A stretch of DNA of 64,000 nt. Origin: Hemiscyllium ocellatum. Its lineage: Eukaryota. The translations under genes were made by a program, and so were the position numbers. The stretch covers positions 75,764,001-75,828,000 of the forward strand of contig NC_083417.1 in assembly GCF_020745735.1 (NCBI RefSeq), given 5' to 3'. The notes under the pieces were generated by a model that saw only the letters and a program-made list of their open reading frames with translations, did no database searches and was not told the origin of the DNA. This document shows, in pieces, positions 1,840 through 43,639 of the stretch (the first letter of the stretch is position 1; every line of letters starts with the position of its first letter).

Positions 1840-2044
1840 CTATGAAGTTCAGGGACTATTTTTAAAAAGAAAAACATACCTAAATTAAAATGCCACTTAC
1901 GAGCACGGGGAACCAAGAACATTTGCCCCTCAAGCCTGTTCCACTATTGAATTAATGATTGGTGTGCGCTGTATCTGCCTGCGCTCTGCAGTGCCATATT
2001 TGCTCCTTTTTTAACCAGAAAAAAACATGAATTAACTTCAGTTA

Positions 2045-2180
2045 CTGCATTCTGAGGAAGGGTCACTCGACCCGATAAGTTAACTCTGATTTCTCTCCAC
2101 CCATGCTGCCTGATATGCTGAACCTTTCTAGCAATTTCTGGTTTAATTTCTGATTTACAGCATTCACGGTTCTCACGGTT
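2045..2180 (+). mobile_element. Penelope-like terminal repeat fragment with mutated hammerhead core
   Basis: CTGAGGA-A-GGGTC-ACTC-GACCC-GATA (GAAA mutated) at 2052-2077, followed by the GCTGCCTGA...CTTTCTAGCAATTTCTG tail shared with other PLE termini here. Confidence 0.6.
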
Positions 2181-2497
2181 TTTATTTAGTTGTTGCATTC
2201 TGCGTTCTCTCAGTCAGACATGACGTTACGAATTCTACTCGGACTTGCTTACTGTAATGAAAGCTTGGTCTTGGTAGAACTCCGGATAGCACTAAACACA
2301 TTCGATCCCTTTTGTAAAAAAAGTGCTGGAGATTTTGAAGTAAACGTCACAAACCATGGTGACTACTACGAATAAGCTGAAAATTATTAATTGCCTCACT
2401 CTTTTTGAATGGTGACATTAGGCTAACTGGTCTCAAATTAGCTAACTTTACGCATTGTATGTTTTACACCAAGCATTGACCTGATTTACCTGACTTT

Positions 2498-3608: not shown

Positions 3609-3659
3609 GAAAGTTAGTCGGAGATATATCACTTCGTAATGCTTTCCTGCACACTTTAC

Positions 3660-3745
3660 CATAAACCTCTTTTCAGCATCTGTATGACATGTAGATGTTT
3701 GGAAGCCCTTCATATTTAAAGCTGCATAAAGCACCCAGTCATCAT
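3660..3745 (-). CDS. Putative ITIM-bearing cytoplasmic exon of Ig-superfamily receptor 1
   Basis: ttttcagttcatAG acceptor (phase 1) and GTAAAG donor (phase 0); DDDWVLYAALNMKGFQTSTCHTDAEKRFM; VLYAAL (3717-3734) fits the ITIM consensus; phases match both flanking exons. Confidence 0.6.
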
Positions 3746-4939
3746 CTATGAACTGAAAAATATCTGGCCTTTTCATTGTCGAATTTGTATATAAGCGGAA
3801 TGAGAAATTGCAGATGAAGACTTTTTGATGGATTAACTGAAAACATATTGCAACTTGTCAGAGATGAGAAAGTTTATTACAGACTCCAGTAATAATGTAT
3901 TCTTGCAAGTGCTTTTCAGATTGACTGACATTCAGGGTTCAATAAAATAAATGAGATGTGACTTTTGGACTGCATTGATCCATTAAGCCGTGGCTATTCC
4001 TTTCATGAGATCACAGCCAATGTAATTTCGAGCAGGAAAATCTTGCCCATTGAGGCTGAACGCATGTTTATAAATCCAAAGTTCATTCATATTCACAAAA
4101 CCGATAGCAGGATCAGCCAGGCAACAGTCTAACGATATCTCTGAAGTCTGACATGTATATACTCATCTCTCCAGGGCAGACGTTTTAAAAATAGAAACGA
4201 AATCACATTGTTTCTTCAAAATGCCTGCAATTCCCTTGCGCCAGCAAGGATGTGATTATTCAGGGACTAATATATAAAAGTGAAATATGTAAGTAAAGTG
4301 GAGTTGAAATGGAATGATTTAATTCTAAAACTTCAGTGTTGACTTTTTTAAACCACTGCAGTATGCACTAAAGTGAATGACACCAAATTATAATCTCTTC
4401 ACTGTTCACGGAATTTTCCGCACTTCTCCGCACTCTTAGAAATGAACGGTATTATTATTCCTCCACGTATGTTATATTAAGTCTTTTTTTTAATATCTAG
4501 CATAAAGTTCGTAATTGTGTTGATTAGAATTGCAGATGCTGCAATCCTAAAAATATAAAACATCACCCACAGAGTCCAACGCTGCATTAACTTTCTCCAG
4601 TATGACTACACATTTAATGCTCTCACAAATAGTTTCCAAAGCACAATGCCAGTTTCAGGTCAACGAGCCCCTTCGGAAGAAAATAACTTCTAACTCAAGT
4701 TTGGGGTCCAGAATTCTTGATAATTACGTTGAATAAACTGCAAAAGCTATTGGAGTTTAAACAGAATATAGCAAATCAAACATACAGTCCAATACAATAA
4801 TGCTTTGAAGCAAAAAGAAGGAAAAGTTCAGAAGAACCTTTATGCTATATCTGTGTTACGTTTTGCTCAATTATTCCACTTCTTCATTACAACGGGACTT
4901 CCACTCTGTAACTAACTGAACCCCTGACTTTTATTTTAC

Positions 4940-5056
4940 CTTTGCGCTTCTTTTGCTGACAGTGGTTCCCAGTGATTACGATCAGCAACAGGAACATCAC
5001 CGCTCCCCCCATACACCCGTACACATGGGACTGGCTGAACACACTCTCCTTACCAG
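4940..5056 (-). CDS. Transmembrane exon of Ig-superfamily receptor 1
   Basis: ttaaccAG acceptor and GTAAAA donor, phase 1-1, 117 nt; AGKESVFSQSHVYGCMGGAVMFLLLIVITGNHCQQKKRK(G): hydrophobic helix plus basic stop-transfer. Confidence 0.7.
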
Positions 5057-5539
5057 CTGGTTAACAGATAATGATGACAAACTCTGTATAAGTGTGGTGT
5101 GCTAACTCAGGTATTTAATGTCTAAAATGGTGTTGTAAAACAATAATACAATGACCTGAGTTTTCAGAAGGCAGAGGCTGAATGAATGTTACTCGGACAA
5201 TAACGGCAAACCTCATATCGGGGAAAAACAGCAGTAAAGGGAAACAAAACGTCGAGTTCAAGACTTTCAGAAAGAACAAACGTTTAAACAAATAACTAAA
5301 GAAAAGTAAAATCAGCGAGAGGTGATTACTGAGACACAGTCCGAGGAAAACACGTGTCGCACTAAATATTTCATAACAGGTGTCTTCAATAAGAGGTGGG
5401 AAAACCGAAAAACAGTGCAATGACATGGCTAATAAAGCTTTATGTAAGCACAGCAATGAAATACGTACTAGCTCAGAAAATGAGAATATATATGCAGTGT
5501 TATTCAGGCGAGGAGTTTGGCAGAATTTTTAACCTGGGA

Positions 5540-13693: not shown

Positions 13694-13853
13694 GTGTATC
13701 AGTCTTGTTTTCCCAAAGAGAAGCACATCGCATTTATCTGAATTAAACCCCAAATGCCACTTCTGAACCCATTGACCCATCTGATCAAGATCCTGTTGTA
13801 ATCTGAGGTGATAGGTTACCTTCTTCACTGTCCACGACACCTCCAATTTTGGT

Positions 13854-14733: not shown

Positions 14734-17700
14734 GTCATCTGAAAACTTTCTAACTGTACCTCTTATGCTCACATCCAAATCATTTGTATAAATGACAAAA
14801 AGTAGTGGACCCAGCACCGATCCTTGTGGCACTCCACTGGTCACAGGCCTCCAGTCTGAAATGCAACCCTCCACCACCACCCCCTGTCTTCTACCTTTGA
14901 GACAGTTATGTATGCAAATGGCTAATTCTCCCAGTATTCCATGAGATCTAACCATGCTAAACAGTATCCCATGGGGAACCTTGTCGAACGCCTTACTGCA
15001 GTCCATATAGATTACGTCTGCTGCTCTTCCCTCATCAATCCTCTTTGTTGCATCTTTAAAAAACACAATCAAGTTTGTGAGACATGATTTCCCATGCACA
15101 AAGCTATGTTGACTATTCTGAATCAGTCCTTGCCTTTCAAAATACTTGTATATTCTGATCCTCAGGATTCCTTCCAACAACTTGCCCACCACTGACTTCA
15201 GGCTCACTGGTCTATAGTTCCCTGGCTTGTCCTCACCACCTTTCTTAAATAGTGGCACCACATTAGCCAACCTCCAGTCTTCCGGCACTTCACCTGTGAT
15301 GATCGATGATACAAATATCTCTGCAAGAGGACCAGCAATCACTTCCCTAGCTTTCCACAGAGTTGTCGGGTACACCCGATCAGGTCCTGGGGATTTAGCC
15401 ACCTTTATGCATTTCAAGACATCCAGCACGTTCTCCTCCGTAAAATGGACATCTTTCAAAATGTCACCATCTATTTCCTTACATTCTATATCTTCCATAT
15501 CCTTTTTCACAGTAAGTACTAATGCAAAATGCTAGTTCAGTACCTCCCACATTTTCTGCGGCTCCACACAAAGGCTTCTTTGCTGATCTTTGAGGGGCCC
15601 TATTCTCTCCCTAGTTACCCTTTTGTCCTTAATGTATTTGTAAATACCCTTTGGATTCTCCTTAATTCTGTTTGCCTAAGTTATCTTTTTGCCTTCTGAT
15701 TTCCCTCTTAAATATACTCCTAATGCCTTTATACTCTTCTGTGGGTTCATTCCATCTATCCCGACTATGTCTGACATATGTGTCCTTCTTTTTCTTAATC
15801 AAACCTTCAATTTCTTTAGTCATCCAGCATTCCCTATACCGACCACCTTTTATTTTCACTCTTACAGGAATCGCTGGATTCTCATTATATCTGAAGTCTT
15901 CCCATTTTTCAGCTGTCTCTTTACGTGCAAACATTTGCCCTCAATCAGCTCATGTTCTTGCCTTATACCGTCAAAATTGGCCTTTCTCCAATTTAGAACT
16001 TCTACTTTTAGATCTGGCCTATCCTTTTCCATCACTATTTTAAACTAATAAATTATGGTCGTAGCTGGCCCCAAGGTGCTCCCCCACTTACACCCTACCT
16101 TATTTCCCAAGAGTGGGTCAAGTTTTGCGCCTTCTCTATTAGGAAAATCCACATACTGAATAAGAAAGTTTTCTTGCATACAAGCAACAAGTTCCTCTCC
16201 ATCTAAACCCTTAACACTACAGCAATACCAGTCCATGTTGGAACGTTAAAATCCTTGACCATAACCACCATATTATTCTTACAGATAGCTGAGAACTCAT
16301 TGTGAGTTTGTTTCTCAATTTCTCTCTGACTATTAGGACTTCTATAATACAATCCTAATAAGGTGATCATCCCTTTCTTATTTCTCAGCTTCACCCAAAT
16401 AACATCTCTCGCTGTATTTCAAGGAATATGCTCCCTCAGCACAGCTGTAATGCTATCCCTTGTCAAAAACTTCACTCCCCCGCCTTTCTTGCCTCCCTTT
16501 CTATCCTTCCTGTAGCATTTGTACCCTGGAACATTAAGCTGCCAGTCCTGCCCATCCCTGAGCCATGTTTCTGTAATTGCTATGATATCCCAGTCCCATG
16601 TTCCTAACCATGCCCTGAGTTCATCTGCCTTCCCTGTTCGCCCCCTTGCATTGAAACAAATGCAGATCATTTCATTAATCCTCACTTGTCCCTGCTGGCT
16701 CTGACTGTTTTACTCACTTCTATTCTCAACTGTATCAGTCTCAGATTGGTTTCCTTCCTCACTACCTCTCTGGGTCCACATTCCACCCCTCCCCACCCCC
16801 GCCTCTTACCTTACTAGTTTAAATCCTCCTCTGCAGTTCTAGCAAATCTTTCTGCCTGTATATTAGTCCCCTTCCAATTTACGTGCAATCCGTCCTTCTG
16901 GTACAGGTTACCTCTACCCCAAGAGATTCCGATGATTCAAAAATGCCAATCCTTCTCCCATACACCAGCTCCTCAGCCATGCATTTATCTGCTCTTTCCT
17001 CCTATTCCTACCCTCACTAGCTCCTAGTGATCCAGAGATTCCTACTCTCGAGGACCTCCTTTCTTAAATTCCTGCCTAACTCTCTGCAATCTCCCGTCCG
17101 CATCTCAAGCTTTTCCTTTCCTATGCCTTTGGTTCCAATGTGGACAATGTCCTCTTGCTGGTCCCTCTCCCCCTTGAGAACACTCTGCACCCTCTCTGAG
17201 ACACCATTGATCCTGGCGCCCTTGAAGAAACACACCATTCTGATTTTTCACTGCTGGCCATAGAAACATCTATCTGTACCTCGGACTACAGAATCCCGTA
17301 ACACAATTGATCTCTTTGAAGTTGGAGTAACCCTCGTTGCATTGGAGCCAGTCTCAATGCCAGAAACTTGGCTGTCGGTGCTATGTTCCCTTGTGAATCA
17401 ATCACCCCCGACATTGTCCAAACAGCATTCTTGTTTGAAATGGATAGAGCCACAGAAGACTTCTGCACTAACAGCCTACCTCTCTTTCCTGATGTTAACC
17501 CATCTCTGTGATTGTATCTGTATCTAATTGCTATCCATCACATACTGTTATTGATGAAAATTCCTGATTGCTTTTAACTGTCTCTCCAACCGATTCATTT
17601 GATCAGCGAAAATTCACAACCAACATCATTTATTGCAGATACAATCCGCAGTAATCATTAAACTTTCCTTAAACTCTCACATCTGACAAGAAGTGCATAT

Positions 17701-28306: not shown

Positions 28307-29377
28307 AGCAAGTGGGTTCTTTTTCCCACATGGTTGTCATATCATGGTTCACGTATTTGTTCAAGGCTAGTTTCATCAATAAACATCGCACACAAGCACA
28401 CACACCAACCTTCACCAGGTATGGCCCAGTGAGGCAGGTATCAGTTTTTGATGCTATGTGCAATATATTTTATAATGTCATCAAATATGTGATAAGAAAT
28501 GAACTTAACCGGCGTATACATTAATATAAATGTTGACTTCAGACTTTGTCAATTTTCATTCAATTGACAATGCTTAACTTTGTTTAAACTAGTAATTTTT
28601 AATCTTAAGAACGTTGAACCATAAAGGACGGTATGTTATATTTCAGGAATATCAATCCCATGAATTCAAACCGAGGCAGCATGTGGTGGTGTAGCTCACG
28701 TTTAGTCAAAGTGGGAGTACACTTCACAACATGTTGGTGTATCACTGTGAAGTTCCAACATTCTGTAAAGCCAAAAGAAATTAAATAAATAACAGATCGG
28801 TGAGATGTGGTGAAACTACAGCTTTTTCTAAGGATATAACTTTTGATGGTGCAAATGTAAAATTTGTAATAGGTCATTCAGATCAAAATCAGTAAAGGAC
28901 GCTTCACAAATGTATAAAATGCCTACAGTTCTCTGCTCAAAGATAAAGAGTTACATATGCATTGTGCAAGAAAGAAAGAGAAACAAATTGTTCTTCCCCA
29001 GGTGTACGTGGGGAAATTGTAACAGAACATATCTTTTATTTTGGAGGCTGTGCGTTGAAAATAAGGTATGTAAACACTATTTTTAAGTAGAAACAGTGTA
29101 CAAAGTGTTGTTTACAGCTTGGAGAAAGGTACAAGTGAAGCAAACTGATACAAGTGAAACAACGTTAACTTTTGGAGACATTGAGTCTAGATAATCTGGC
29201 ATCAATTGTTGAGGGAACAGGACAGCCCAGCACAATACATCACACCCTGTTTGGTCTGGCTTCAGTTTTACACAGGTACTGTGGAAATATGCAACACTGA
29301 AGTGTACCCCTCCTGAAGCGATCTGCATCAGTCTCTCTGTCTCTCTCTCTCTCATTTACATGTTTAAAGTTTGAGAG

Positions 29378-30330
29378 AAGATTTGTAGCTCGAGAGCTCG
29401 TTGTTGTGGTTCTGTTCACCGAGCTGAGACTTTGTGTTGCAGACGTTTCGTCCCCTGTCTAGGTGACATCCTCAGTATTTGGGAGCCTCCAGTGAAGCGT
29501 TTCTGTGATTTTTCCTCCGGCATTTATAGTGGTTTGTCTCTGCTGCTTCCAGTTGTCAATTCCAGCTGTCTGCAGCAGTGGCCGGTATATTGGGTCAAGG
29601 TCGATGTGTTTGTTGATAGAATCTGTGTATAAGTGCCATGCTTCCATGAATTCCCTGGCTGTTCTCTGTTTGGCTTGTCCTATAATAGTCGTGTTGTCCC
29701 AGTCGAACTCATGATGCTTGTCATCTGCGAGTGCGGTTACTAAGGATAGCTGGTCGTGTCATTTCGTGGCTAGTTGGTGTTCACGAATGAGGATCGTTAG
29801 CAGTCATCCTGTTTGTCCTATGTAGTGTTTTTTTTGCAGTCCTTGCGTGGGATTTTGTATGCTGGGTATCGGGTCCCTGTCCTGGTGAGTTGGTGTCTGA
29901 GAGTGGCTGTTGGTTTGTGTGCTGTTATAAGTCCTATTGGTCGCAGCAGTCTGGCTGTCATTTCAGAAATGTTCTTGATGTATGGTAACATGGCTCGTCC
30001 TTTGGGTTGTGGCAAGTCCTCATTCCGTTGTCTTTCTCTCAGATATCTGTTGATGAAATTGCGGGGGTATCCGTTTTTGGCGCATACATTGTAGAGGTGT
30101 TCTTCTTCTCTTTTTGCCGTTCTGATGTGCTGCAGTGTATTGTAGCCCTTTTGAACAGTGTATTGATGCATGTTCTTTTGTGTGTGTTGGGGTGGTTGCT
30201 TTCATAGTTCATTGACAGATACCTAAGGGAATGATAACCGAGTGAGGATATGCCAGAATCCAAAGGACTAACCACGTTACCATGCATCAAGAACATATTT
30301 GAACTATCGTGTGGTGCTTAGTTCCTACGG
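29378..30330 (-). mobile_element. Penelope-like element (family B): RT thumb, GIY-YIG, terminal repeat
   Basis: HPNTHKRTCINTLFKRATIHCS, KNGYPRNFI, YKIP..DCKK..IGQT, HEFDWDNTTII...AREFMEAWH. Confidence 0.88.
29438..29478 (-). ncRNA. Minimal hammerhead motif (family B)
   Basis: Reverse complement CTGAGGA-T-GTC-A-CCT-AGAC-AGG-G-GAC-GAAA-C-GTC; core intact, stem I weak (ATA/TGC). Confidence 0.55.
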
Positions 30331-30679
30331 GTGAGGATCAGTTTCTGAGGGCGGTTTAAGTTAAACTGATCTAGTTGGAGTGGGCTGTCCAGCAGGGTGG
30401 GATGGGGTATGTTCAACAGGGGTCAGATTTTCATTAACTTGGAGATAATGCAGGATTTATTCTAATACTGGTTTTTCCTTGTGCAACATGGTATATTGGA
30501 GCAGGAGCAGGCCATTCAGCTCTTCGATTCTGGTTAATTCTATTTGATCACAGCTGTACATCCAGTTCAGTACCCTGTTCCTACTTTCTCCCCGTATCCA
30601 ATGATTCCTTAAGAACTAAACCTGCATCTTTCTTGAAAGCCTTTGAAGTTTGAGCCTCAAATGTTTCCATATAATAACA

Positions 30680-30802
30680 AGTGATAGATCAGTAACAAAC
30701 AGAGATAATGCTCGATAATCTCAGCATGTTTGGCAGCATCTGTGGAAAGAGAAAGAAACAGAGTTAACATTTCCTGTCCACTATGACTGTTCTTCAGAAC
30801 TG
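30680..30802 (-). mobile_element. Penelope-like terminal repeat fragment with hammerhead motif (family D)
   Basis: Reverse complement AGTT-CTGAAGA-ACA-GTC-ATAGTG-GAC-AG-GAAA-T-GTT-AACT; stem I AGTT/AACT. Confidence 0.55.
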
Positions 30803-32060
30803 GTAAGTTACTCAGAGCCCTCTGAATCCTCGACTACAATTCAGATTTGAATTCTTACAGAGGGCTTTAGCCATCAGGTGACTTCCCACCGGAAATGTAA
30901 ACTTCATCGCCAAGTAACATGTCAGTGAGTCACTATTTCCAGGCATCCGAGTTGGACCCAGACTCCGAGTATCCAGAGTCTGGAAGAACTGAGCTTCATG
31001 CAAATTCCCAATAGTTGTTATTTTGTTGGTGAATGAATAAATATAACTTGTACTTGATTATATGATGTTTTCTTTTTCCTGTACGTTATAGTACAGCATA
31101 ACTTATTGATCATCAAACTAGACATTCACCAAAGATGAATTTGGTCCAAGAAATATTTCTTAGATACCTGAAAGGCAATTATTCCTTCAAATATTGTTCA
31201 AATAACAACAAGTCATTCTTTACTTAAAACTGCTTTCTGCATTTCTAAATACACTACATGCTGACATGCAGGCACACACATGTAAGTTAAAGTCACTCCA
31301 TCAAGGTAGTCTGACCTCTGTGTTAACTGATAGCAGTGGATTGATTTTGTGCTTTGCTAACAAAGTGCGCAACCTGGAGCCAACTACATGTCAATGATTC
31401 AACTGAGTGTATCAGCAAGTTGAAATATTCTACAGGTGATCTCAACGCATGAAACACAGATTCCTTCATGAACATACTTGTTTAATTAACTAATAGTCTT
31501 GCTGAGCATCCAAACTTTGAAATGTTTTAGGTTTCAAAAACTTACATATTTTATCATTGAACTGCAGAGTTTCTGCCTCTCTTTCCACTTGCACATTGCT
31601 AAATGATCTGACCACCAGTGCAGGAACCACATTTCTTCAGTCAATCTTGCCACATTTATTGCTTTATGAAAGACAACAAAGCACACGCATGACGGGATGA
31701 GACGCCATGTTTTTAACAGTGGGTTAAAATAACAATTAAAATCCCATGGCTTAAAAGAGATTTTAAATTTCGACAATTCACAGAAAAGCCATGCATTACT
31801 TCAACATTTCAACATCTGGAAAGATAACACATTACAGACATAATGCTGAGGACAAGTTAATTCAGTCCACATGGTCTCCAGTCGTAGAAGATATGTTAAC
31901 TGATAAAACACAGCTTGCATATATCAATTCTCAGCTGGACAATTAAAATTTGAATTATCTCCAAGACAATCTTGTCTATAACGTATATACTTGACAGTTG
32001 TTCTCCTGAATATGGTTATATGCAATTCATAAATTTTTCAATCCAAAATGTACATTTTGT

Positions 32061-32368
32061 GGGCGGCACGGTGGCACAGTGGTTAGCACTGCTGCCTCAC
32101 AGCGCCTGAAGACCCGGGTTCAATTCCCGACTCAGGCGACTGACTGTGTGGAGTTTGCACGTTCTCCCCGTGTCTGCGTGGGTTTCCTCCGGGTGCTCCG
32201 GTTTCCTCCCACAGTCCAAAGATGTGCGGGTCAGGTGAATTGGCCATGCTAAATTGCCCGTAGTGTTAGGTAAGGGGTAATGTAGGGGTATGGGTGGGTT
32301 TCGCTTCGGCGGGTCGGTGTGGACTTGTTGGGCCGAAGGGCCTGTTTCCACACTGTAAGTCTAATCTA
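32061..32368 (+). mobile_element. HE1-type tRNA-derived SINE
   Basis: Pol III A box GGTGGCACAGTGGTTAG and B box GGTTCAATTCC; CR1-like 3' end GGGCCGAAGGGCCTGTTTCCACACTGT; CTAAT tail. Confidence 0.93.
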
Positions 32369-32479
32369 CATCACTGATCACATTATTAATTACTCACAGT
32401 TAGGTTGCCTTATGAAACTGGAAGTGAACTGTTGCCAGGACAGAAGGCTTGAGTTGTAAAGCTGCTCCTTTTTCACTGG

Positions 32480-32862
32480 AGCATAGGAGTTTAAGAAACG
32501 ATCTAGGAGAGAATTTTCTTAACTAATGAAGGTATAGATGGAGTTACCTATAGTTGTCTTTTCCCAAAAATTAGGGATCTCAAGACTAAGGGACACATTT
32601 TTAAGGCGAGAGAAGAGCGTTTTAAAAAAGACGGGAGGAGAAAGGTTTTTACACAGAGGGTGGTTCACGTGTGGAATGAGCTTCCTGAGGAAGTGGTGGT
32701 ATGGGTACAATTGCAACATTTAAAAGGCATTAGGATAAGTACCTAAATAAGAAATGTTTATAGGGATATGGGTGCGAGCAGGCAAGTAGGACCAGTTTAG
32801 ATCAGGATTATGTTCAGCATGGACTGGTTGTACGAAAGGGTCTGAATGACTCACAGACTCCA
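32480..32862 (+). mobile_element. CR1 LINE 3' fragment
   Basis: RTRGH-like segment, F..RV...WN.LPE.VV motif, CR1-type 3' UTR. Confidence 0.75.
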
Positions 32863-33522
32863 GAGTGCAGTCAGTGTAGTTCAGGCCCATCCAATATGCT
32901 ACTGGGAAAGGGATAGATAATTTGGATCCAGGAGCAACTGAGAATATCACTATTCTAACGTGAGGTGTTCAATGTCATGACTCAAGAATGTCTACTTTCT
33001 ATCCAAGGAGTACAATTGCATAGTTTTAATGAATATTTCTACTTGCCATTACATGGATGACAGCCTCTGCAAAACAACTCTGGAAAATTGCATTGTCCAG
33101 GACAAAATAGCACATTTGATCAACAAGCATATTCTCTTAAATTATCAGAGCACTTCAGAAGGAAATGACTCATCTAGATGGTCATTAATAGTGATTCACA
33201 GAAAGTGAATGCATACGAATAACACCTATTAATAGTGCATCTGTTACAGCTTTAAGCTGAAAACTTTCATATCATGGTAAAAGTACTTCTGAACATCTCT
33301 CTGCAAAACGGATCACAACAATCCCTGATTCCCAATTTATCCCTTTTCCAGGATCCTTGTATTGTTATGGAATTGATGGATGCCCAAGACAGAAAATAAT
33401 CAATACGATTTCCTCATGATGAGACATTGTCTTGACAAAATGAATGTGGAACATTGGAAAGAAGGCTGCAGAAGCTCCAGAACAATAAGGGGAGAAACAT
33501 TATTTAAATAATCAGCTTGCAC

Positions 33523-34769
33523 GTCACATCAATTAAAGAAACAATGTCACAAATTACAAGAATTAAATTTATAATTTAACACACTAATCCAAAACACAGA
33601 TCAAGTACTTCTCAATTTTAAATTTGTGATCAATATCAGATATTTTATAACTCCTAGAATGTTGCTTACACCCGTCTGGTGTTTTACTAGTCCTTGGTAA
33701 AGTTGTGAATATCTTCATTTGAGAGTGATTGATGAAAAGGGGTTACATAGCTAAGAATCATTGAGAAAAAACCTGCACATAGATGAAGATAAATAATGTC
33801 AAAGACATGATGCTGATATGTAGCGCCGAAAAAGTAACAAGTAATGGAATTTGAGCAGATTAATCTGACAATGCTGATCAGTTTTTTAACGATACAGCAT
33901 TAAGAGGATTATTATTGTGCTCTGTTGTCCTGCTTTCAATACAGAGTTTAGCAGTAGTTCTGCCTCCCTGCTCTTCAAATTGTTACAATTACAGTGGGCT
34001 GCTTCATAAAAAGATTTTGTTTTAAAATGTTAACAACACTGAAAACCGAAAGCAATTGGCTATGCGAGCCAAACAAAGGGCCAACACATCAAATCATTAT
34101 ATGAAGGATTTAATGCAAAGCATTGCAGATTGCAGCACTTCAAGTGCACATCCAACCAAAAATAACTTGTGAAAGAGTCAAAGTTGTCTGCCTGTAATAT
34201 ACTTTCAGACCAGAGATTTTAGATAGCTACGACACTCTGGGATAAACTGTTTCATCATCTCCCCGTTAAACTTTTCTGTCAATCTCTTTAAATCTATATA
34301 CACCAATCACTGACTTCAACATGATGGCTAAGGACCTCTTCCCCGTCCAAAATATCTCAGCCTAACTAAGTTTTGTGCATCCCAATTTCAATGGCAAATG
34401 TATCATTCCATCCAATCGTTCCTCAGCTACATTTTTAGGTTGCAACAACTGCTTCAGGAATACCTTCAGCCTACTCTCTCTGATCTCATAATATTTTGTG
34501 GTGGTTTCCGGTCACAAGAAGAGTGGATCTTATTTGGAAAGGCAAGTTTTTCTTTCACTCAGTGGACATGTGCTCATTGACTCACACGCATATATGTTGT
34601 TCAATTAGGGATAGCGAAGAACGTTTAAGAAACATTTGTCTATCCTGGTCTCAGTTACAACTGATGATCTCATATTTTTCTTGCCAGTATGTCTAAGGGC
34701 TGTTCACTCTGGGATGTCCTGTCCGCTGTGCAGCTTATGTGCAGGTACATATTTCGTTTGCTGTGTATG
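33523..34769 (+). repeat. Copy 1 of a 1.25-kb direct repeat
   Basis: Collinear with 45551-46794 from GTCACATCAATTAAAGAAACAATGTCAC to GTACATATTTCGTTTGCTGTGTATG; offset about 12.03 kb. Confidence 0.92.
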
Positions 34770-35048
34770 AACTGTTCAATGTCAATTTAAAGTCAATCTG
34801 GATTTTAAAAATGATATAATTTATTAATGTTGTATTTTTGTCAAGTCAAATATTCCCAGAATTCATTTACTGCGTTTGTGGGAAGAAAATATGACATTGA
34901 CTTCATACAGTGGTTTAAAATTTGGAGAATTAATTGCACAGTAAAATATGCTAAATTGCTATTGCATCAATAGCCTGGAATAACAATGTTATTTGGGTGT
35001 TGCAGACCGTGTTTCTGTTTAATCGCCGTAAGTATCCTTGTTTGACAG

Positions 35049-35361
35049 CTGCTGCTGGTGTACTTCAGCCAAAGTGAATCCGAATCTTAAAGGATAACGG
35101 CGCAGAGAAGTTCAACAGCTATCTTGCTATGTCTTTTCTCCTACCAAATTGACAATTCAAATACTATCGCTTACTGGTGGAGAGAAGGTGATAAGACCTT
35201 TCTGCAGGAGGATAGCAGAAAGTTATTCCGTATAACTAAAGAAGCAGCCTATCTTAATATTCTGTATGTGACAGTCCAGGACGCTGGAACATATACCTGT
35301 GCAGTCAAGTCCGAACAGCGAACGATTGGCAAAGAAACTAATGTACAACTTACTGGTTATG
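35049..35361 (+). pseudogene. Ig V-set exon (germline V-J-joined type) of receptor 2, in-frame TAA at 35088-35090
   Basis: tttgacAG acceptor and G|GTAAGT donor; RITAQRSSTAILLC...AYWWREG...AYLNILYVTVQDAGTYTCAV...IGKETNVQLT: B-strand C, C-strand W, DxGxYxC, G-strand GxxT. Confidence 0.85.
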
Positions 35362-35544
35362 GTAAGTATCAGCTCAGATAAACACTGACACTTAGCCGCT
35401 TAGAGAAAAAAAAGCAAGCAACAACCATTAGATTGAGACATATCGTGTGAAATAATTGCACTTACTTAAAATGAAATATGTTCACGAATATTGAAACCTT
35501 GGAAATCCACTGAAACTACAAAGTTTCTGGTCTGCTCTGCATTT

Positions 35545-36350
35545 TCAAAAATCCCTTCTGGGACATGGGTGTTGCTGGCTGGTCCAGCATTTATTGACTG
35601 TCACTAGTTGTTCTTGACAAAGTGGTGGGCAGCTGCATAAAATCGCTGCAATCTATGTGCTGTAAATAGCCCAAAATGCTATTTTGGAGACATGTACAAG
35701 ATTGTGACCCAGTGATTGTGAAGGAATATTGATGTGCTTCCATGTCAGGATGTTTAGTGGTTTTGGAGAGACTTGAAGATGGTGGTGTACTCATAGACTT
35801 GCTGCCCTTGCCCTTCTACATGTTAGTGCTTTTGGGTTTTGTAGGTATTTTCTCAGGATCTTTGATGAATTTCTGCAGTAAATCTTGATGGCATACACTG
35901 CTGCTACTGAGTGTCTGTGGTGGAGTGACTGACTGTGGTGTCAATAAAGTGGGATGCTTTTTATGCGGATGATGTCAAACGTCTTGAATGCGCCTAGACC
36001 TGCAGGCAGACAGGCAAGTTGGGAGTATTCCAACACATCCCTGTCTTGTGTCTTGTAAATGCTGGACAGGTTTTGTGGAGTCAGTAGCTGAGTTACTTGC
36101 TGCAGTATTCCTATTCTCTGACCTACGTTTCTAGTTATCTGGCTAACCACAGTTTCTGCTCAGTGGTAACCCCCCAAAATATCAATAGTTAGGGATTTTC
36201 TGATCGTGATTCCATTGAATATCAAGCGTTGAGAGTTCGATTGTCTGTTCTTGGAGATGGATTTGACTGGCATTTGTGTTGCATGAATGTTACTTGCAAC
36301 CAAGTCTTGCTGCATTTGGTCATGGGTTGGTTCCGTTTTTTCGCAATTAG
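35545..36350 (-). mobile_element. LINE (CR1/L2-like) 3' fragment
   Basis: ILQQVTQLLTPQNLSSIYKTQ.R.VLEYS.LA RT C-terminal motif. Confidence 0.7.
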
Positions 36351-36825
36351 CTTTTGCAGAGAAATTCATTGAAATACTTTAACGTATTTTGTATTGAATT
36401 GGAACACAGAGGGACAGGATGAATATCTGCAAAATTTTGCATTTGTGATGTCCTTTAACTCACTGGAATAGCCAAATCCTCAGTCCCATTACTTGGATGG
36501 TTTTTGCTAAATTCCCAGTATCCAGGTCAAATTCATCATCGTGTTTGTAAAGAAAGATGCACTTTAATGATTCTATTTTTTTTATTTTAAGTCAGGACAA
36601 AGCCTGAAAACTAATTTTCCTATAAACACAGAAGGTATTTTGAAAGGATCTTAGGATATTTTAATGTGATAAATGTAACGTTATTTTCAAGTGCTGTCCA
36701 TAAGAACAATTAATGCAAGTGGCATGCTGGAAGAATGTTGTTCTGGTCACTTAAAAAGTATAATTTTGCAGAAGATGAAAAGTTGACTTACCCAGTTTGT
36801 GTTATTTTCCATTCTGCTTCACCAG

Positions 36826-37127
36826 CCCCTTTGAAAATTGTCTCTGTGCCATCTGAAGACCATTTTTCTGCTTCTCTCAGACTCCAGTGCAGGACGTGTT
36901 ACTTTTACTCAAAATCCTTTAACCTTACTTGGCACAAAAATGGGATCGCATCTTGACAGGATTTACGAATGAACAACAGGCAAACTTTGAGGATCTTTAT
37001 GAAGTCATCAGTTCCTTACAGTTGCAAGAGGCTATTCAAAGCGGCACAGTTGACATGTGTCAAGTTGACATGCTTCATATTTCAAGCTCATTTCCTGCAA
37101 TTGCCAGCTACACGATTACGAATAAAG
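36826..37127 (+). pseudogene. Ig C1-set exon of receptor 2, one frameshift near 36955
   Basis: ttcaccAG acceptor and G|GTAAC donor (phase 1-1); APLKIVS...LRLQCRTCYFYSKSFNLTWHKNG, then after the shift LTGFTNEQ...LYEVISSLQL...GTVDMCQVDMLH. Confidence 0.82.
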
Positions 37128-37146
37128 GTAACATTTTATACTGTTG

Positions 37147-37280
37147 ATTCCTGAAGAAGGGCTCATGCACGAATCGTCGATTCTCCTGCTCCTTGGATTC
37201 TGCCTGACCTGCTGCGCTTTTCCAGCAACACATTTTCAGCTCTGATCTCCAGCATCTGCAGTCCTCACTATTTCCTCTAA
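37147..37280 (+). mobile_element. Penelope-like terminal repeat fragment (family A), mutated hammerhead
   Basis: CTGAAGA-AGGGCTCATGCAC-GAAT-CGTC-GATTC followed by the family A tail. Confidence 0.8.
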
Positions 37281-38134
37281 CATTTTATAATATGTGTTAT
37301 ATTAAATACTCATATATGTTTCAAAATAGATAAGTAAGTATGAAATGGTTATGAAAGTTATCATAGGTGGTTGCGACAAAATCATAATTTAACTCCATGT
37401 AATGGATAAAAGTTTTCTTCCTTTGTGTTGTTTGGAACTGATGCGTAGTTCTCACATGTGACCTTACCAAAACTATTTACCATAGGTTATAAAATTATTT
37501 GTTTATGTATAGACTGACTACTCACAAAGGACTGAAAGTTTGATGCTAATTCTTGAGGAAGAATGGATAATATCGAATTTAAGTTTTCCATGTATTTCCA
37601 ATTATCCGGTAGCTCCAGTTTATATTTCCAATCATCAGAGATAATTATTAAATAATCAAGACAGATTCATAGCTGATTGGGTCGTAGCTGCAGAGAATAA
37701 GATTATTTTAGCTGAACTTTATCTCCACAAGCAACTCAAACAATTCTGAAAGCAGGCTTCATTATGTTTTTTTTCTGACTCTGATTTGAATGCAATCAAA
37801 TTAAACTCTCACCAAATCATGTATTATTTTGCAACGTAGCTTAGAAAACTGAGCAGTTATTATAGGTAGCACTATTTCCATTCATTTTAAATTTGTCATT
37901 ATTCGAGACACCTTTATCATTTACCTGTTACTTTAAATTCCAGACATTTTGTTTCCAGTTGCACAACAATCAGTTAAATAAAGAGACAACACAATTGAAA
38001 TTCTCAGCCTTAATGTACTATATTTATCATTTTTCTAAAGCAGTACAATTGAAAATGATCCTTATGATATTTAAGTCTGCATTTCTTCAGGCTATATTGC
38101 AACTTCTAATCTTCAATTTATATTAATGTTACAG

Positions 38135-38248
38135 ATTTTGCCTCGAAAATCATTGTTCCAATGATGGCTGGTTGGGCCACTGGTGCACTTGCAATTCTAA
38201 TATTGACCATGATGCTTACCAAGGGGTTCCTGTTCTTTAAAATCAAAG
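38135..38248 (+). CDS. Transmembrane exon of receptor 2
   Basis: ttacAG acceptor and G|GTATGT donor, 114 nt, phase 1-1; DFASKIIVPMMAGWATGALAILILTMMLTKGFLFFKIK. Confidence 0.75.
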
Positions 38249-38723
38249 GTATGTACAGGAATGAAATATCCCATTGAAATTAATATAATTGGGAGCTGAA
38301 TTTCTAAACTGTACAATTTAAACAACTATTTTACGTGAAACTTTTTTCAAACATATACCCTGATTCACATCTAATATAAAACAAGAACGTTTGCAGCTCC
38401 AGTTTGCTAAGATGTAGATCAGAATTGTGAGAGTGAACCACATTGCTGAAAGAAGTTTCCATTGTTTCAACGCTCAAGACATAAATTCAAAACATCAGTG
38501 TGTAATATGTAGAACTACATTGCAAAACTTTTTGTCCCATTGTATCCTGTTTACACCAGCCTTTGATTTCTGATGAGTCCAAGTATCATCCTTTTTGGTG
38601 TCGCTTCGTGTCATTTTTATTTCTCAGGAGGGAGAGAGAAAAAAAATCAATAAATCCAACTCAGCATGAAGATGTGGTGAGACAAATTTCTTTTATTATG
38701 TCTATTTTAATTTCGAAGTCGAG

Positions 38724-38890
38724 NNNNNNNNNNNNNNNNNNNNNNNNNNNNNNNNNNNNNNNNNNNNNNNNNNNNNNNNNNNNNNNNNNNNNNNNNNNNN
38801 NNNNNNNNNNNNNNNNNNNNNNNNNNNNNNNNNNNNNNNNNNNNNNNNNNNNNNNNNNNNNNNNNNNNNNNNNNNNNNNNNNNNNNNNNN
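38724..38890. other. Assembly gap (167 N)
   Basis: Run of N. Confidence 1.
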
Positions 38891-39339
38891 TTTGAAGATT
38901 TCATCAGCTCTCAAAGGCACAAATTCAGCTGAATAAAAACAACACTAAAGAAAATAGAAAATGGTAGGCAGTTCCCCAAACCGTTGCAACTATTTTAGAC
39001 AGTCAAACTCGTTCATAAACGTGTAAGCTGTAATAGTTACCTTTTGCTGATATTCTTAACCAAGATTCATAGATTTGCTGCTGGGAAAAAGCTATGATTT
39101 TTCATTTCTTTCATACTGAACAAATGACAATGTGCTGAATAATTTTGCCTTGTTGATTACAGACATAACATTACATTGGCTATTTTGAATGATACTTTTA
39201 AAAGTTTACAAATCGAGATGATTGTTCTCCCTTTTATTTCTTTACTGTTCAAAATTAACTCATCCATTAATCTGAGATCAGTGATTATGCCTGACTTCTA
39301 CCATTGCTTGTACCAAAGAACTGCAAATATTATGTAGAG

Positions 39340-39560
39340 TTGAAAAGGGTGACACTGGAAAATCACAGCAGGTCAGGCAGCATCCGAGGAGCAGAAAAGT
39401 AGTCATTTCAAACATTATATCTTCATCAAGAAGGATAGAAGGGCTTATGCTCGAAACGTGGACTCACCTGCTCCTTGGATGCTGTCTGACCCGCTGTCCT
39501 TTTCCAGCGCCACCCTTTTGAACTCTGACTCTCCAGTATATGCAGTCCTCACTTTCTTCT
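39340..39560. mobile_element. Degenerate fold-back Penelope-like terminal repeats (family A)
   Basis: CAGCAGGTCAGGCAGCATCCGAGGAGCAG mirrored by CTGCTCCTTGGATGCTGTCTGACCCGCTG. Confidence 0.7.
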
Positions 39561-40884
39561 AAATATATGATGCAGACAGCTTGAACAAGTTGGCTTCCTT
39601 CAAGTTTAACTGGAGTCTGTCTCTCTGCTACTGCAATGTGCTACGCAAAATGCTGTCTTGAAAAAGAAATGAATGAGTTGTTGTGATGCAAACTGCTTTC
39701 ATTTTTAATTTGTAAAATCAATGAAATGTGAGAGGAGCATCCGTATGTGTGGCAATGGAAAAGACGCGGAGCCATATTCAGGAATAACCGAGAACATTTG
39801 CGCCAAACTTGAAGCCCTTGTTCTGACTCCAGAGGACACAATTCAATGACACTTACTGATTCTTGACTGCAGCTGAATGCATTCAACCAGCAGATTTATT
39901 CTCTTTAAATATATTTTCAAAGCTGTTAGAGTCTCTAATTGAATTCATCAGATTTATCATCTCAATTGTAGTCCTGGATTTAAATTTGTTTTTAAAAATA
40001 TTTTTGATTCTACATCCTTGAGTTTAATACGCAAAAAAGCCTGATATTTCAATTCATTTAATACCTGGAATTCCCTCCTTGACAACAATGTACCTAAATT
40101 ACCTGGACAGCAGTAAGCCAAGAAGCTGGTTTGCTACTGGACTTTTAATGATAATCAGTTATTGGCACAGAATATTGACCTTGCCACTGTGGTTTACATC
40201 CCAGTAGAACTTGTCCGTCATGTAGAATCGACTCAACTCTATACTGCAGGTACAGCAAAAAGTAAATTCCTTTCTTGACGTCTTCAGAAATCCAGAACAA
40301 AGATTTTACTCCACTATTGCACATCTTGCTGTGAACTATCCCAGTTGTACTGTTGTAGATAGCAGAATGATGTGCAGATGCAATGTTTCGCCTGTGTTTT
40401 ATTGTTTCAATAGGAAAGAAAATTATCTATGATTGAGAAATACTGCACAGCAGATCAAAGATACCTTTTTTGATCACCGAAATTTTGTGGTTAAATTTTT
40501 TGACAAAAATGTCCCCGGTTGTTTTATTTTTTCTATTGTCACCAACCTGAACATGTTCTTCCCTAAATAGTTGACCAATTTTCTAACCTAAAACATCAAT
40601 AATTTACTTTAAAATGTATTGTCTGGCATTAAATGTACCTTGTGAATTCTTTGAAAATGCACTTCAGACTTTAGTGCTTTTATTTATTACTGTTGAACTG
40701 ACCTATTGAAATAATTACTTTCCTTTATTCATTAGGGCGCAATTTGATTTTAAAATTGATTTTCTATTGTCAATGGTAAGTAGTGTTCTTACTTTTTTCT
40801 AATTGTGCTAATTTAATTAAGTTATAATCAGGCTACGATCATTCAAATCCTGCACTATATACCCTCCAAATGAAAGCCGTTACT

Positions 40885-41112
40885 CATCCACTGATTCTAT
40901 CAACAAACATATCGACCTGGACCCAATATCCCGGCCACTGCAGCGGACAGCAACTGATAACCGGAAGCGGCAGAGACAAGCCATTATAAATGCCGAAGGA
41001 AACATGACAGAAGCGCTTCACAGGAGGCTCCCAAGCGCTGAGGATGTCACCTAGAAAGGGGACGAAACGTTTGCAACAAAAACTCCCAGCTCGGCGAACA
41101 GAACCACAACAG
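40885..41112 (+). mobile_element. Penelope-like terminal repeat (family B)
   Basis: Reverse-complement match to 29400-29625. Confidence 0.85.
41035..41074 (+). ncRNA. Minimal hammerhead motif (family B)
   Basis: GCG-CTGAGGA-T-GTC-A-CCT-AGAA-AGG-G-GAC-GAAA-C-GTT-TGC; core intact, GUU triplet, 3-bp stem I. Confidence 0.6.
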
Positions 41113-41447
41113 AAAATCACTTGTCAGAATTCAAAAACCTAATTAAATTCAACTAATGCATGCAACTTTTTCTTCAAGACATTGCATTATAGCAAAATAT
41201 CCTTGGTGACTTTAAATTAAAACTCTACTAATATTAGTAAAATTGAAACGTAATATTTGCTTTTTGGGATGTGGTGTGATATTCGTGGCAAGAAACGGAT
41301 TAGAGTGAGAAACTGTAAACTTTAATGGTTGTAATGAAGAGTTAGCAAAGTCAGTCCAACAAACTAATTGCCCATGTTAAGAATGTATGCTTGTGTCTTG
41401 ACTGCAAAATAAAATAATCTAATAAGTGCTGAATCTTGACTATCTAG

Positions 41448-41558
41448 AGAAAACGAGAGATGCCTGAGGATAAGCTGACATACGCTGCTCTCAATCTACT
41501 TGGTTCCGAGTATTGTATAATTCTTCAACAACGAGAAGAAATGACAATGTATGCCGAG
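41448..41558 (+). CDS. Cytoplasmic exon A of receptor 2 (ITIM plus ITSM-like)
   Basis: tatctAG acceptor, phase 0; RKREMPEDKLTYAALNLLGSEYCIILQQREEMTMYAE(V); LTYAAL 41475-41492, TMYAEV 41544-41561; possible donor GTACAT at 41559. Confidence 0.7.
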
Positions 41559-41569
41559 GTACATTTTAG

Positions 41570-42225
41570 ATCATATAGACTCATAGAGATGTACACCACG
41601 GAAACAGATCATTTTTTCCTACTCGTACATGCTGACTAGATATCCTAAATTAACATCGTCCCATTTGCCAGCTCTTTGCCGATATCCCTTTAATCCATTT
41701 TTATTCATGTACCCATCCAGATACCTTTAAATGTTGTAATTGCGTTTGCCTCCACCACTTTCTCTGGCAGCTCATTCCATACATGCCTTTGCATTAAAAA
41801 ATTGCCCCTTACGTCTCTTTTATATTTTTTCCTTCTCATTTTAAAAGTATGCTCTCTCGTTCTGGACTCCCAAAACCCAGGCAAAAAACCTTATCTATTT
41901 GCATTATACATGACCGTTGTGATTTTATAAACCTCGATAAAGTCATCCCTCAGCCTCCAACACACCAGGGCGACCACCCCAAGCTATTCAGCCTCTCCCT
42001 ATAGCTCATTCCTCCAAACCTGGCAATATTCTTGTAGAATCTCAACTTTCGCACCATCCTTCCTATAGGAGGAAGACCAGAATTGCACACAACATTCCAA
42101 AAGTGGTCTTACCAATGTTATATATAGCCGCAGCATGACTTCCTAACTGCTATATTCAATGCTCTGACCAATAAAGGAAAGCATACAAAATACCTTCTTC
42201 ACTATTCTATCTACCTGAGACTCTT
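41570..42225 (-). mobile_element. CR1 LINE 3' fragment
   Basis: TCATAGA-type tail; reverse complement encodes F...VQFW.SSYRK and LNSLG..ALVCWRLR.D. Confidence 0.8.
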
Positions 42226-42342
42226 GCGTAAATAATCATCTACACGAGTTGATTTCAAAATGATGTTGAAAATTGCTTATTGAAATTTTCATCGAGAATG
42301 ATTTAAATGAGCACTAATTTTGTCTCAGTGCTGTGTTTTCAG

Positions 42343-42471
42343 AAAAATCAGAGCATGACAGACAGAAAACTGACTTACCTTGCTTTGAAATTCAATGATT
42401 CCAGTACTTCATTGAAACTCAAACGCCAAGAAATCAGTCCAGTATATGCAGCAGTGAAAAACAGCCACTAA
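42343..42471 (+). CDS. Terminal cytoplasmic exon B of receptor 2 (ITIM plus second Tyr motif)
   Basis: gtgttttcAG acceptor, phase 0; KNQSMTDRKLTYLALKFNDSSTSLKLKRQEISPVYAAVKNSH*; LTYLAL 42370-42387, PVYAAV 42439-42456. Confidence 0.75.
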   Translation, partial: KNQSMTDRKLTYLALKFNDSSTSLKLKRQEISPVYAAVKNSH

Positions 42472-43639
42472 ATGTGGCAAATGAAAATATACTCAAAGGA
42501 TAGATGCAAAGACTGCATCACAGAGATGTTTATGTTGCTTATCACTTTAAAGTGTTATTTTCCTCAAATAAATCTATAGTAATTTTGCAAAACTGTGCAT
42601 TAATTTCTGCTTGATTTCAGCTTTAAAATGATTGCAACAGTTACCACTAAAAATCACAACTCAATTATTTCTAACGGTTAAAGATCTCCTTTTTTTAAAA
42701 TCTGTCCAAAGTTTGACATATTAATATTGAAGATATTATTGAGCATTTTTATGTGGCTGTACACTGTCACATATTCACCGTAATTCCGCTTGTACCTGTA
42801 ACATGGGGTAATACCGATATTTTCATTTCCGTTGTCCAATCATTGAATTTTGACTTAGAAATGACGGGCTTTACTGTGACAAATGTTCGCAAGGTTTCTG
42901 TTGGTTAATTCTCCTTAACTTGTTTGTGTTTCATTATCTTTACTGGCACAAGTTGATATTTCATTTTGCTTTCATTGCGGCACTTGTTTTAATCTGGCCT
43001 CTCCCCTTGTTTTGAGAATGTACATTTTGATTTTTCCGAATCCAGAGAGTGAAAGAGATCTAATTGCAACTCTGTCTCATATTTTGATGGTTTATTTTGC
43101 TTGGTTATTTCACTTAAGTTAATAATTGACAGTTTGTTATTCAAATTTTATTCTTATCGTACATTCCATGTAGAGTGGCACTCTGCCGAGACATTTCAGA
43201 ATGATGCTCCATCCTTGATGCTACACTATTGACGTTGCAATCTTGTTATAGTATGATATAGTAGGAAACAATGGCATGACTCATGAATGTCTCTGAATAA
43301 CGAAACGTAAAGTTATCTTTATTGATGTGAGAATGAAATTGCCGAAATAAATTAATTTACATTTGAAGAAAGTGCATTGATATACGCCTAAGCAATATTT
43401 TCAATACATATGTGTATTGTTTTCATATAGCAATCTAAACTGTGCACATGTTTTATTATGGATTTTTATGAACATGAATGTATTTTTGACCGAGTGATCA
43501 AAAACTTACAATTATGCAACTATAAAAATGAATTTATTAGTCTGAAGACTTTTGAAAGACTACTTGGTGAGTTGTAAGCTGTGATTGGCTAAATCGAGGC
43601 AAAGAAAAATGATGACAAAATCTGTTTTTCTTTGAGAAA

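Follow-up and report, generated by a model that had tools for sequence, protein, structure and literature searches.

The question raised by this locus of Hemiscyllium ocellatum is whether a group of exons predicted to encode a V-like Ig domain, a C1-set domain, a transmembrane (TM) segment, and a tail with tyrosine motifs represents a working receptor gene, an error of the assembly, or the remnant of a gene, and to which receptors it is related. The C1-set domain is rare outside Ig, TCR, MHC, SIRP, tapasin, and B7. The stretch of DNA analyzed, hereafter the window, is 64 kb long, and all the positions refer to it. With a probability of about 85%, we consider the locus an unprocessed pseudogene, decayed in place, from a family of type I membrane receptors of cartilaginous fishes.

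Structure of the Locus

The locus embeds seven exons, which span positions 34689-42471 of the plus strand and correspond to a leader, Ig1, C1, TM, a 49-nt linker, and two tyrosine-motif exons. The Ig, C1-like, TM, and tyrosine-motif exons occupy the positions originally predicted and are matched by real chondrichthyan proteins (1e-27 for Ig1 and 2e-22 for C1 by tblastn; identity to P0019, 55%). Two zebra shark (Stegostoma tigrinum) genes, P0159 ("signal-regulatory protein beta-1-like") and P0155 ([quoted passage not shown]), share the seven-exon plan and the intron phases, and they are collinear with the window, introns included, at about 71-72% nucleotide identity; at the protein level, about 50% of the residues are identical in Ig1 and 53-60% in C1. 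Neither of these genes is closer than the other to the window copy, so that they are co-orthologues and neither is a 1:1 orthologue.

The leader (signal-peptide) exon (34689-34744) starts with the ATG at 34689, is followed by a GT donor at 34745, and was placed by aligning the window at the nucleotide level to both zebra shark loci (positions 6001-6055 of L001, and L002). A nearer leader, with its ATG at 34986-35027, would leave an "intron" (GTAAGT...CAG) of just 21 nt, and it was rejected because of this same alignment. The Ig1 exon (35049-35361), V-like or I-set-like, scores 32 bits with the Pfam V-set and 26 bits with the I-set models. It extends from the A strand of the domain to the G strand (IGKETNVQL) and ends with a phase-1 donor. 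The zebra shark genes have the same organization, and the gene is non-rearranging, as proposed. The C1-set exon (36817-37127) was delimited by tblastn and by alignment to the zebra shark homologues. The TM exon (38135-38248; phase 1-1) encodes a span devoid of charged residues, which points to an inhibitory-type form. The cytoplasmic exons 1 (cy1, 41448-41558; phase 0-0) and 2 (cy2, 42343-42471) carry the motifs LTYAAL (ITIM) and TMYAE (ITSM-like), and LTYLAL (ITIM) and PVYAAV, respectively, the members of each pair being separated by 23 residues. The second exon, an internal duplicate of the first (E 0.012), ends with a TAA stop codon (42469-42471), downstream of which an AATAAA is located at 42567-42572. 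The tail thus contains four tyrosines and is SIRP-alpha-like, as predicted; P0155 possesses the same tail motifs.

The linking cytoplasmic exon (38628-38676; phase 1-0), originally thought to be missing and possibly hidden in a stretch of Ns, is present according to the alignment with the homologues, and it ends 47 nt upstream of the assembly gap (167 N, 38724-38890). The gap lies within the linker-cy1 intron: its flanks are collinear with both zebra shark genes, where they map 56-59 nt apart (L001 10924/10981, L002 16088/16148) without any annotated exon in between, and no reading frame crosses it. An alternative linker acceptor (AG at 38637-38638), which would restore the frame, is unlikely because the AG at 38626-38627 serves as acceptor in both homologues, whose A-run is shorter by exactly 2 nt.

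No sister copies were found on the plus strand of the 64-kb window by tblastn using the exons and 25 family proteins as queries. A more distant relative lies on the minus strand at about 1.7-5.1 kb of the window, with weak tail and TM matches only.

Lesions of the Window Copy

Translation from the conserved ATG ends within Ig1. Relative to both zebra shark genes, the leader has a +1 insertion near 34719, compensated by a +2 near 35057 in Ig1, and a 1-nt deletion between 35089 and 35090 then breaks the ancestral frame; from 35075 to 35097, none of the three frames remains open (TGA at 35075, TAA at 35088, and TAA at 35095). The TAA reported in the V exon does exist in frame at 35088-35090, but it is caused by this deletion rather than by a point nonsense mutation. 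In the C1 exon, the loss of one nucleotide between 36946 and 36947 results in a TGA at 36954, the ancestral acceptor AG is now a TG (36815-36816), leaving as the only in-frame AG a cryptic one 9 nt downstream (36824-36825), the hallmark tyrosine before the second cysteine has become an aspartate (37052-37054), FYP has become FYS, and an in-frame insertion of 6 nt is found near 37065. Finally, the linker (49 nt vs. 47 nt in both zebra shark genes) has a +2 in an A8 run, whose length is read from the assembly alone, giving a TAA at 38651.

The -1 in Ig1, the -1 in C1, the +2 in the linker, the AG to TG change in the acceptor, the Tyr to Asp replacement, and the +6 insertion are absent from both zebra shark genes and are lineage-specific. 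The three uncompensated indels (-1, -1, and +2) yield a net shift of zero and cy1 and cy2 are still open, which suggests that the decay is not very old. With a stop in Ig1, frameshifts in C1 and the linker, a lost C1 acceptor, and decayed hallmarks, the window copy cannot make a receptor. The zebra shark ectodomains, in contrast, are intact, even though a separate -2 deletion, at the end of cy1 in P0159, shifts the frame of the final exon of that gene.

The lesions were compared with contigs from four DNA samples of two studies over positions 35000-38300, the leader, the linker, cy1, and cy2 lying outside this interval. The contigs exhibit neither differences nor gaps over 35000-35194 and 36407-37198, and the frame switch in C1 is identical in all of them; hence, the Ig1 and C1 lesions are not assembly errors, as had been envisaged for them, and the pseudogene proposal holds. 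A T/G SNP at 36199 among the sample contigs implies that more than one haplotype was sampled; since contigs drop rare variants, they can show the presence of a variant and not its absence.

Other data concern the constraint on the locus. The identity to zebra shark is about the same in exons and introns (74.7% for Ig1 vs. 72.7-74.3% for the introns on either side), and the dN/dS ratio amounts to 0.58 overall and to 0.79 for Ig1. No RNA run containing the C1 exon was found, a weak result since few RNA runs exist for H. ocellatum. The locus has kept both its introns and its position, and its lesions have no counterpart in the homologues, as is the case for unprocessed pseudogenes.

Alternative Explanations

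A first alternative is that the gene, although dead as a coding sequence, has kept some importance: it might be transcribed as a non-coding locus, or it might supply Ig-exon sequence for gene conversion among the clustered paralogues. A 77%-identical paralogue, P0157, exists in the same species, and the two zebra shark copies are 87% identical over V-C1 and about 70-77% elsewhere, which suggests conversion or recent duplication. However, no conversion tract has been shown for the window copy, and the search for RNA runs with the C1 exon speaks against transcription, so that we regard this idea as improbable.

It is also quite improbable that the window carries a null allele still segregating together with an intact, functional one. 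Presence/absence and null polymorphisms are indeed frequent in immune receptor clusters, an intact allele of low frequency might have been dropped from the contigs, and cy1 and cy2 are still open; nevertheless, all four samples carry the Ig1 and C1 lesions without alternative letters, several independent lesions lie on one haplotype, and the divergence of the exons equals that of the introns.

A working gene, with a reference assembly in error at the lesions, is scarcely credible, since, in spite of the nearby gap and of a linker lesion that falls in a homopolymer outside the read check, the contigs of both studies show exactly the same lesions in Ig1 and C1, and at least five independent defects, including the lost acceptor and the decayed hallmark residues, would have to be explained away. 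We therefore retain the unprocessed pseudogene.

The Two Ig Domains

The antigen-receptor, "V(J)" reading of domain 1 turned out to be overstated. The domain has 55 residues between its cysteines, and the AlphaFold model of residues 19-226 of zebra shark P0159 (pLDDT 87) contains strands A', B, C, D, E, F, and G, with a minimal C' (one bridging residue) and no C''. The best sequence matches of domain 1 in the PDB are I-set domains (titin, DCC, and contactin) and V domains of the B7 family, and not Ig, TCR, or SIRP V domains. The J motif (F/W)GxGTxLxV, with its GxG bulge, is lacking in the window (IGKETNVQL) and in its zebra shark homologues (LGQAAVQL). Domain 1 is therefore not a classical antigen-receptor V. 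The bulge is present in the closest same-species paralogue, P0157 (IGKGTAVQL), as well as in P0034, P0161, P0165, and P0166, which argues that it was ancestral in the family and was lost in the window copy.

The proposal that the second domain belongs to the C1 set is supported by the intact relatives, since P0155, P0159, P0019, P0034, P0146, and P0165 match Pfam PF07654 with 44-52 bits (cut-off 21); relatives of the window copy also pass the Pfam V-set. The two halves of the window C1, each searched apart, gave no Pfam match, and they align with the C1 domains of the relatives at 53-60% identity. The hallmarks of the C1 set are FYP...W..NG and YxCxVxH; where the relatives have FYP and YTCQVYH, the window copy has FYS, W.KNG, DMC, and V-DM-LH with a two-residue insertion. 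The loss of the hallmark residues represents the decay of a true C1 domain.

The Family and Its Relationship with Known Receptors

As foreseen, the locus points to a family: homologues with the same architecture occur in sharks, rays, and a chimaera. In the alignment, the window copy and the single-gene models of the family have just one C1 exon, placed after Ig1 and before TM, and short-tailed forms with an Arg in the TM are also found. The original proposal was to be refuted if the domains fell inside a well-annotated orthologue group of known function. This applies in part, since the domains do belong to an annotated group, whose names are all automatic and inconsistent ("PTPNS1-like", "SIRP beta-1-like", and, for some members, "NCR3LG1 (B7-H6)-like"). 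In the literature on UrIg, shark SIRP, C1-set, and ITIM, we found no paper on this cartilaginous-fish family.

Tetrapod SIRP-alpha (SHPS-1/PTPNS1; PDB 2wng) resembles the family in its combination of Ig and C1-set domains, TM, and two ITIM/ITSM-like pairs with similar spacing, and in both groups there are paired forms in which the tail is short and the TM has a basic residue. The BLASTP match with SIRP-alpha is weak (9e-12, 28% identity) and extends from the F strand of Ig1 across the G strand and C1; a second alignment reaches LTYAALNL, which is paired with ITYADLNL, and the rodent and turtle proteins are matched at 1.5e-11 and 6.5e-13. On the other hand, the family has one C1 domain, whereas SIRP has two membrane-proximal C1-set domains, and domain 1 is about 10 residues shorter than in SIRP-alpha and has no C''. 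Moreover, in the PDB, the C domains of Ig (C-kappa and C-mu) and of UrIg2 (7e-15 to 3e-10) outrank SIRP-alpha (9e-10) as matches of C1, so that, by sequence comparison, the family does not seem any closer to SIRP than it is to the constant domains of Ig. No syntenic marker for a comparison with SIRP was found in the 64-kb window.

As for B7 (PD-L1 and ICOS-L), PD-L1 (3bik) is the best rigid two-domain match of the modelled zebra shark ectodomain (TM 0.76, rmsd 3.1); the B7 V domains are also among the best sequence matches of domain 1. The identity to B7, however, is 18-23% only, and Fab light chains and UrIg2 have equal Foldseek E-values. To our knowledge, the double ITIM/ITSM pattern is not a feature of typical B7 tails.

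The elasmobranch UrIg/UrIg2 (PDB 9dmx) are similar in that C1-set domain(s) follow an Ig domain joined in the germline, and the C domains of UrIg2 are among the best C1 matches. Nevertheless, UrIg2 is an antibody-like, homodimeric V-C1-C2-C3 molecule with a bona fide V (PMC12227049), while the receptors described here combine a V-like domain that is short with only one C1 and a tail of inhibitory type; the UrIg paper mentions neither SIRP nor ITIM (PMC12227049).

On the whole, the possibility that the family is the cartilaginous-fish counterpart (co-orthologue) of the tetrapod SIRPs, with inhibitory forms and activating forms bearing an Arg in the TM, can be put forward only tentatively, and we consider it rather doubtful.

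A Possible Mechanism

The exon plan of the family runs from a leader through a short V-like Ig, a C1-set Ig, a TM, and a short linker to a duplicated pair of cytoplasmic exons, each providing an ITIM and, about 23 residues further on, an ITSM-like tyrosine. By analogy with known receptors, the intact members are most likely inhibitory receptors. Ligand binding would fall to their membrane-distal domain, Src-family kinases might phosphorylate the paired tyrosines of the tail, and the tandem SH2 domains of SHP-1/SHP-2 might dock on them, thereby damping signalling as in SIRP-alpha. This SHP-recruiting mechanism is drawn, on the basis of the motifs alone, from the analogy with the established SIRP-alpha tail. 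The role of activating partners would be played by the relatives that have a short tail and an Arg in the TM.

Significance of the Locus

Taken by itself, the locus matters little, being one decayed copy within a rapidly turning-over cluster of immune receptors, and what happened to the window copy is ordinary gene-family decay. The annotation gains a corrected exon model, in which leader and linker are located and the gap is intronic, and the lesions, dated by comparison, can be used in birth-and-death analyses. The family is of moderate interest for comparative immunology in that, among the oldest jawed vertebrates, it combines the rare C1-set domain with a tail of the SIRP-alpha type. If the relationship with the tetrapod SIRPs were true, then a paired system of inhibitory and activating V-C1 receptors, with a germline-joined, J-like G strand, would have been in place at the base of the jawed vertebrates, and the window locus would document the birth-and-death turnover of that system.

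Structure of the Gene and Its Zebra-Shark Homologues

The window, vertebrate DNA of 41% G+C with a single 167-N gap at 38724-38890, harbors on its plus strand an intron-bearing SIRP-like pseudogene spanning positions 34689-42471. Its exon limits, derived from nucleotide alignments to two zebra-shark genes, place the leader at 34689-34744, the short V-like domain 1 (Ig1) at 35049-35361, the C1-set domain at 36817-37127, the transmembrane segment (TM) at 38135-38248, a short linker at 38628-38676 and two cytoplasmic exons with Tyr motifs, cy1 and cy2, at 41448-41558 and 42343-42471, followed by an AATAAA at 42567. Full-length relatives have the order leader, Ig1, C1, TM, short linker, cy1 and cy2; the linker reads GGKRTSLNTSQHAD in the chondrichthyan protein P0019. 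In the window, cy1 and cy2 are internal duplicates of one another. All the Ig, C1-like, TM and Tyr-motif exons of the original prediction were found on the plus strand, and the phase 1-0 linking exon that it considered missing does exist, upstream of the gap; the prediction was thus mostly correct, though incomplete. The gap lies in the intron separating linker from cy1: no reading frame crosses it, its flanks map 56-59 nt apart in both zebra-shark loci (L001 10924/10981 and L002 16088/16148), and neither gene has an annotated exon between these points.

The pseudogene is collinear, introns included, with both the L001 gene (protein P0159) and the L002 gene (P0155), at 71-72% nucleotide identity each; being equally close to it, the two are co-orthologues. 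The Ig1 and C1 exons are 74.7% and 80.7% identical to the zebra-shark gene, respectively, with introns at about the same level (72.7-77.3%), and the dN/dS ratio, 0.58 overall, rises to 0.79 in Ig1; these values are compatible with relaxed constraint or with fast evolution. The zebra-shark P0159 gene carries a 2-nt deletion of its own at the end of cy1, which throws its last exon out of frame (…TIYRDKTKHDRLQTDLPCSEIQ) and removes the distal ITIM pair (L001:13540-13552 and 13697-13750); frame 2 of the window cy2 exon contains this same out-of-frame peptide. Upstream of the pseudogene, collinearity with L002 extends over 28320-28503 and 28337-33587, and matches an unusual extension that the P0155 model has at its N terminus, which is probably a mis-annotated upstream exon lying outside the receptor. 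The cy1-cy2 intron measures 784 nt in the window versus 144 nt in L001, and the extra stretch (41580-42240) matches L002 3675-4112 in reverse, and is therefore a repeat insertion.

Other features were also observed. The introns contain copies of a very high-copy SINE-like repeat (37150-37280, plus strand, and 39350-39560), whose summed contig depth reaches 10^6-10^7 versus about 10-60 in the flanking unique sequence. On the minus strand, open frames resembling the apurinic endonuclease part of a LINE (…WDIIAITETWL…) at 16048-16709 suggest retroelement debris between receptor genes, and a more distant relative in the family is represented at 1669-5060 by its 3' exons, namely a TM-like open reading frame (GCMGGAVMFLLLIVITG) at about 4890-5060, a cy1-like piece (WVLYAALNMKG) at about 3700 and a last exon at 1669-1839 in which Ser replaces the ITIM Tyr (LTSASLELNG).

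Inactivating Lesions

Lesions were scored by comparison with the two zebra-shark genes. The leader as assembled has a +1 at about 34719, and Ig1 starts with a +2 at about 35057; the two jointly restore the frame, leaving about 15 signal-peptide codons scrambled. In Ig1, a -1 between 35089 and 35090 brings the ancestral frame to a TAA at 35095, and the other frames end at TGA 35075 and TAA 35088, so that none is open across the deletion; the TAA originally noticed in the V exon is indeed present at 35088, but the ancestral frame itself is broken by the deletion and ends at 35095. The ancestral C1 acceptor AG is now TG (36815-36816), with a cryptic in-frame AG 9 nt downstream, and the predicted C1 frameshift corresponds to a -1 between 36946 and 36947 that yields a TGA at 36954; restoring one base there gives NGTRILTG, the very sequence found in the family protein P0034. 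The C1 exon shows further decay (FYP changed to FYS, Asp replacing the Tyr before the second Cys, a 6-nt insertion), and a +2 in the A8 run of the linker as assembled creates a TAA at 38651. Open frames persist in both cy1 and cy2.

The possibility that these lesions were assembly errors, raised initially, is contradicted for Ig1 and C1. Indeed, Logan contigs from four DNA samples of two studies, aligned to window 35000-38300, cover 35000-35194 and 36407-37198 with zero differences and zero gaps, and hence the lesions in these two exons are genomic; this confirmation is limited to Ig1 and C1. An intronic T/G difference at 36199, where runs X3 and X5 out of the four have G, implies more than one haplotype among the samples. 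The C1 exon was contained in none of the RNA runs searched, which is weak negative evidence. Sequence and read check together show that the window copy is non-functional as a protein-coding gene, upholding its proposed pseudogene status.

Domain Types

Intact relatives exceed the Pfam thresholds for both C1-set (44-52 bits, cut-off 21) and V-set (30-39 bits, cut-off 26). Against PDB, the C1 domain of P0159 matched best Ig C-kappa, C-mu and C-alpha (7e-15 to 1e-12), followed by UrIg2 (3e-10) and SIRP-alpha (9e-10), and a kappa chain aligned with the whole family protein without interruption from FR3 via the G strand into C. Domain 1 is a short one: 55 residues separate its cysteines, and by sequence it matches I-set domains and the V domains of the B7 family best. 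In the AlphaFold model of the zebra-shark ectodomain (pLDDT 87) strand C'' is absent and C' is reduced to a bridging residue; the best two-domain Foldseek superposition was with PD-L1 (TM 0.76), whose E-value is equalled by those of Fab light chains, ICOS-L and UrIg2. A J-like GxGT occurs in several members, including the closest same-species paralogue (IGKGTAVQL), and is absent from the window gene (IGKET) and its zebra-shark homologues. While the architecture, tail and pseudogene status first proposed stand, the "VJ/antigen-receptor" reading was overstated, given the short domain 1, the lack of C'' in the zebra-shark model and the absence of GxGT.

A Chondrichthyan Receptor Family

Searching 1.84 billion representative proteins with Ig1 retrieved mostly giant multi-Ig proteins, together with five single-domain matches (292-412 aa, 39-55% identity) from horn shark, bamboo shark and elephant fish. 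Word-index searches added members in zebra shark, sevengill shark, catshark, sawfish, stingray, devil ray, whale shark, basking shark and white shark. Their names are automatic only and inconsistent ("signal-regulatory protein beta-1-like", "NCR3 ligand 1-like", "tapasin-related protein-like", "uncharacterized"), and our search of the available literature library found no paper on this family. The Hemiscyllium ocellatum paralogue P0157 is 77% identical to the window gene. Its RefSeq model (546 aa over 49 kb) joins this closest paralogue, whose C1 is truncated before the second Cys, to a second, different V-C1-TM-ITIM gene and is probably a chimeric prediction spanning two neighbouring family members.

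UrIg and UrIg2, shark non-rearranging genes with a V-C1-C2-C3 plan, were described without mention of ITIM or SIRP (PMC12227049) and, with that plan, form a separate family from the shark SIRP-like receptors. The window gene also differs from SIRP proper in two of the structural traits on which membership was judged, since it has one C1 rather than two and its domain 1 is short. In its mode of action, by analogy, it may nevertheless be assigned to the SIRP type of receptor.

The family tail, in agreement with the ITIM/ITSM-like motifs first noted, carries an ITIM followed 23 residues later by an ITSM-like Tyr, a pattern which occurs twice and resembles that of SIRP-alpha; the BLASTP alignment with rodent SIRP-alpha spans C1 and TM up to LTYAALNL/ITYADLNL. 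Activating partners of paired receptors carry Arg in the TM, and short-tailed family members with such an Arg were found.

The window gene adds a new but dead member to a known kind of gene. Judging from their motifs and by analogy with the established mechanism of SIRP-alpha, its intact relatives are probably inhibitory receptors, whose phosphorylated tyrosine pairs would recruit SHP-1/SHP-2, and the relatives with Arg in the TM would signal via an ITAM adaptor.
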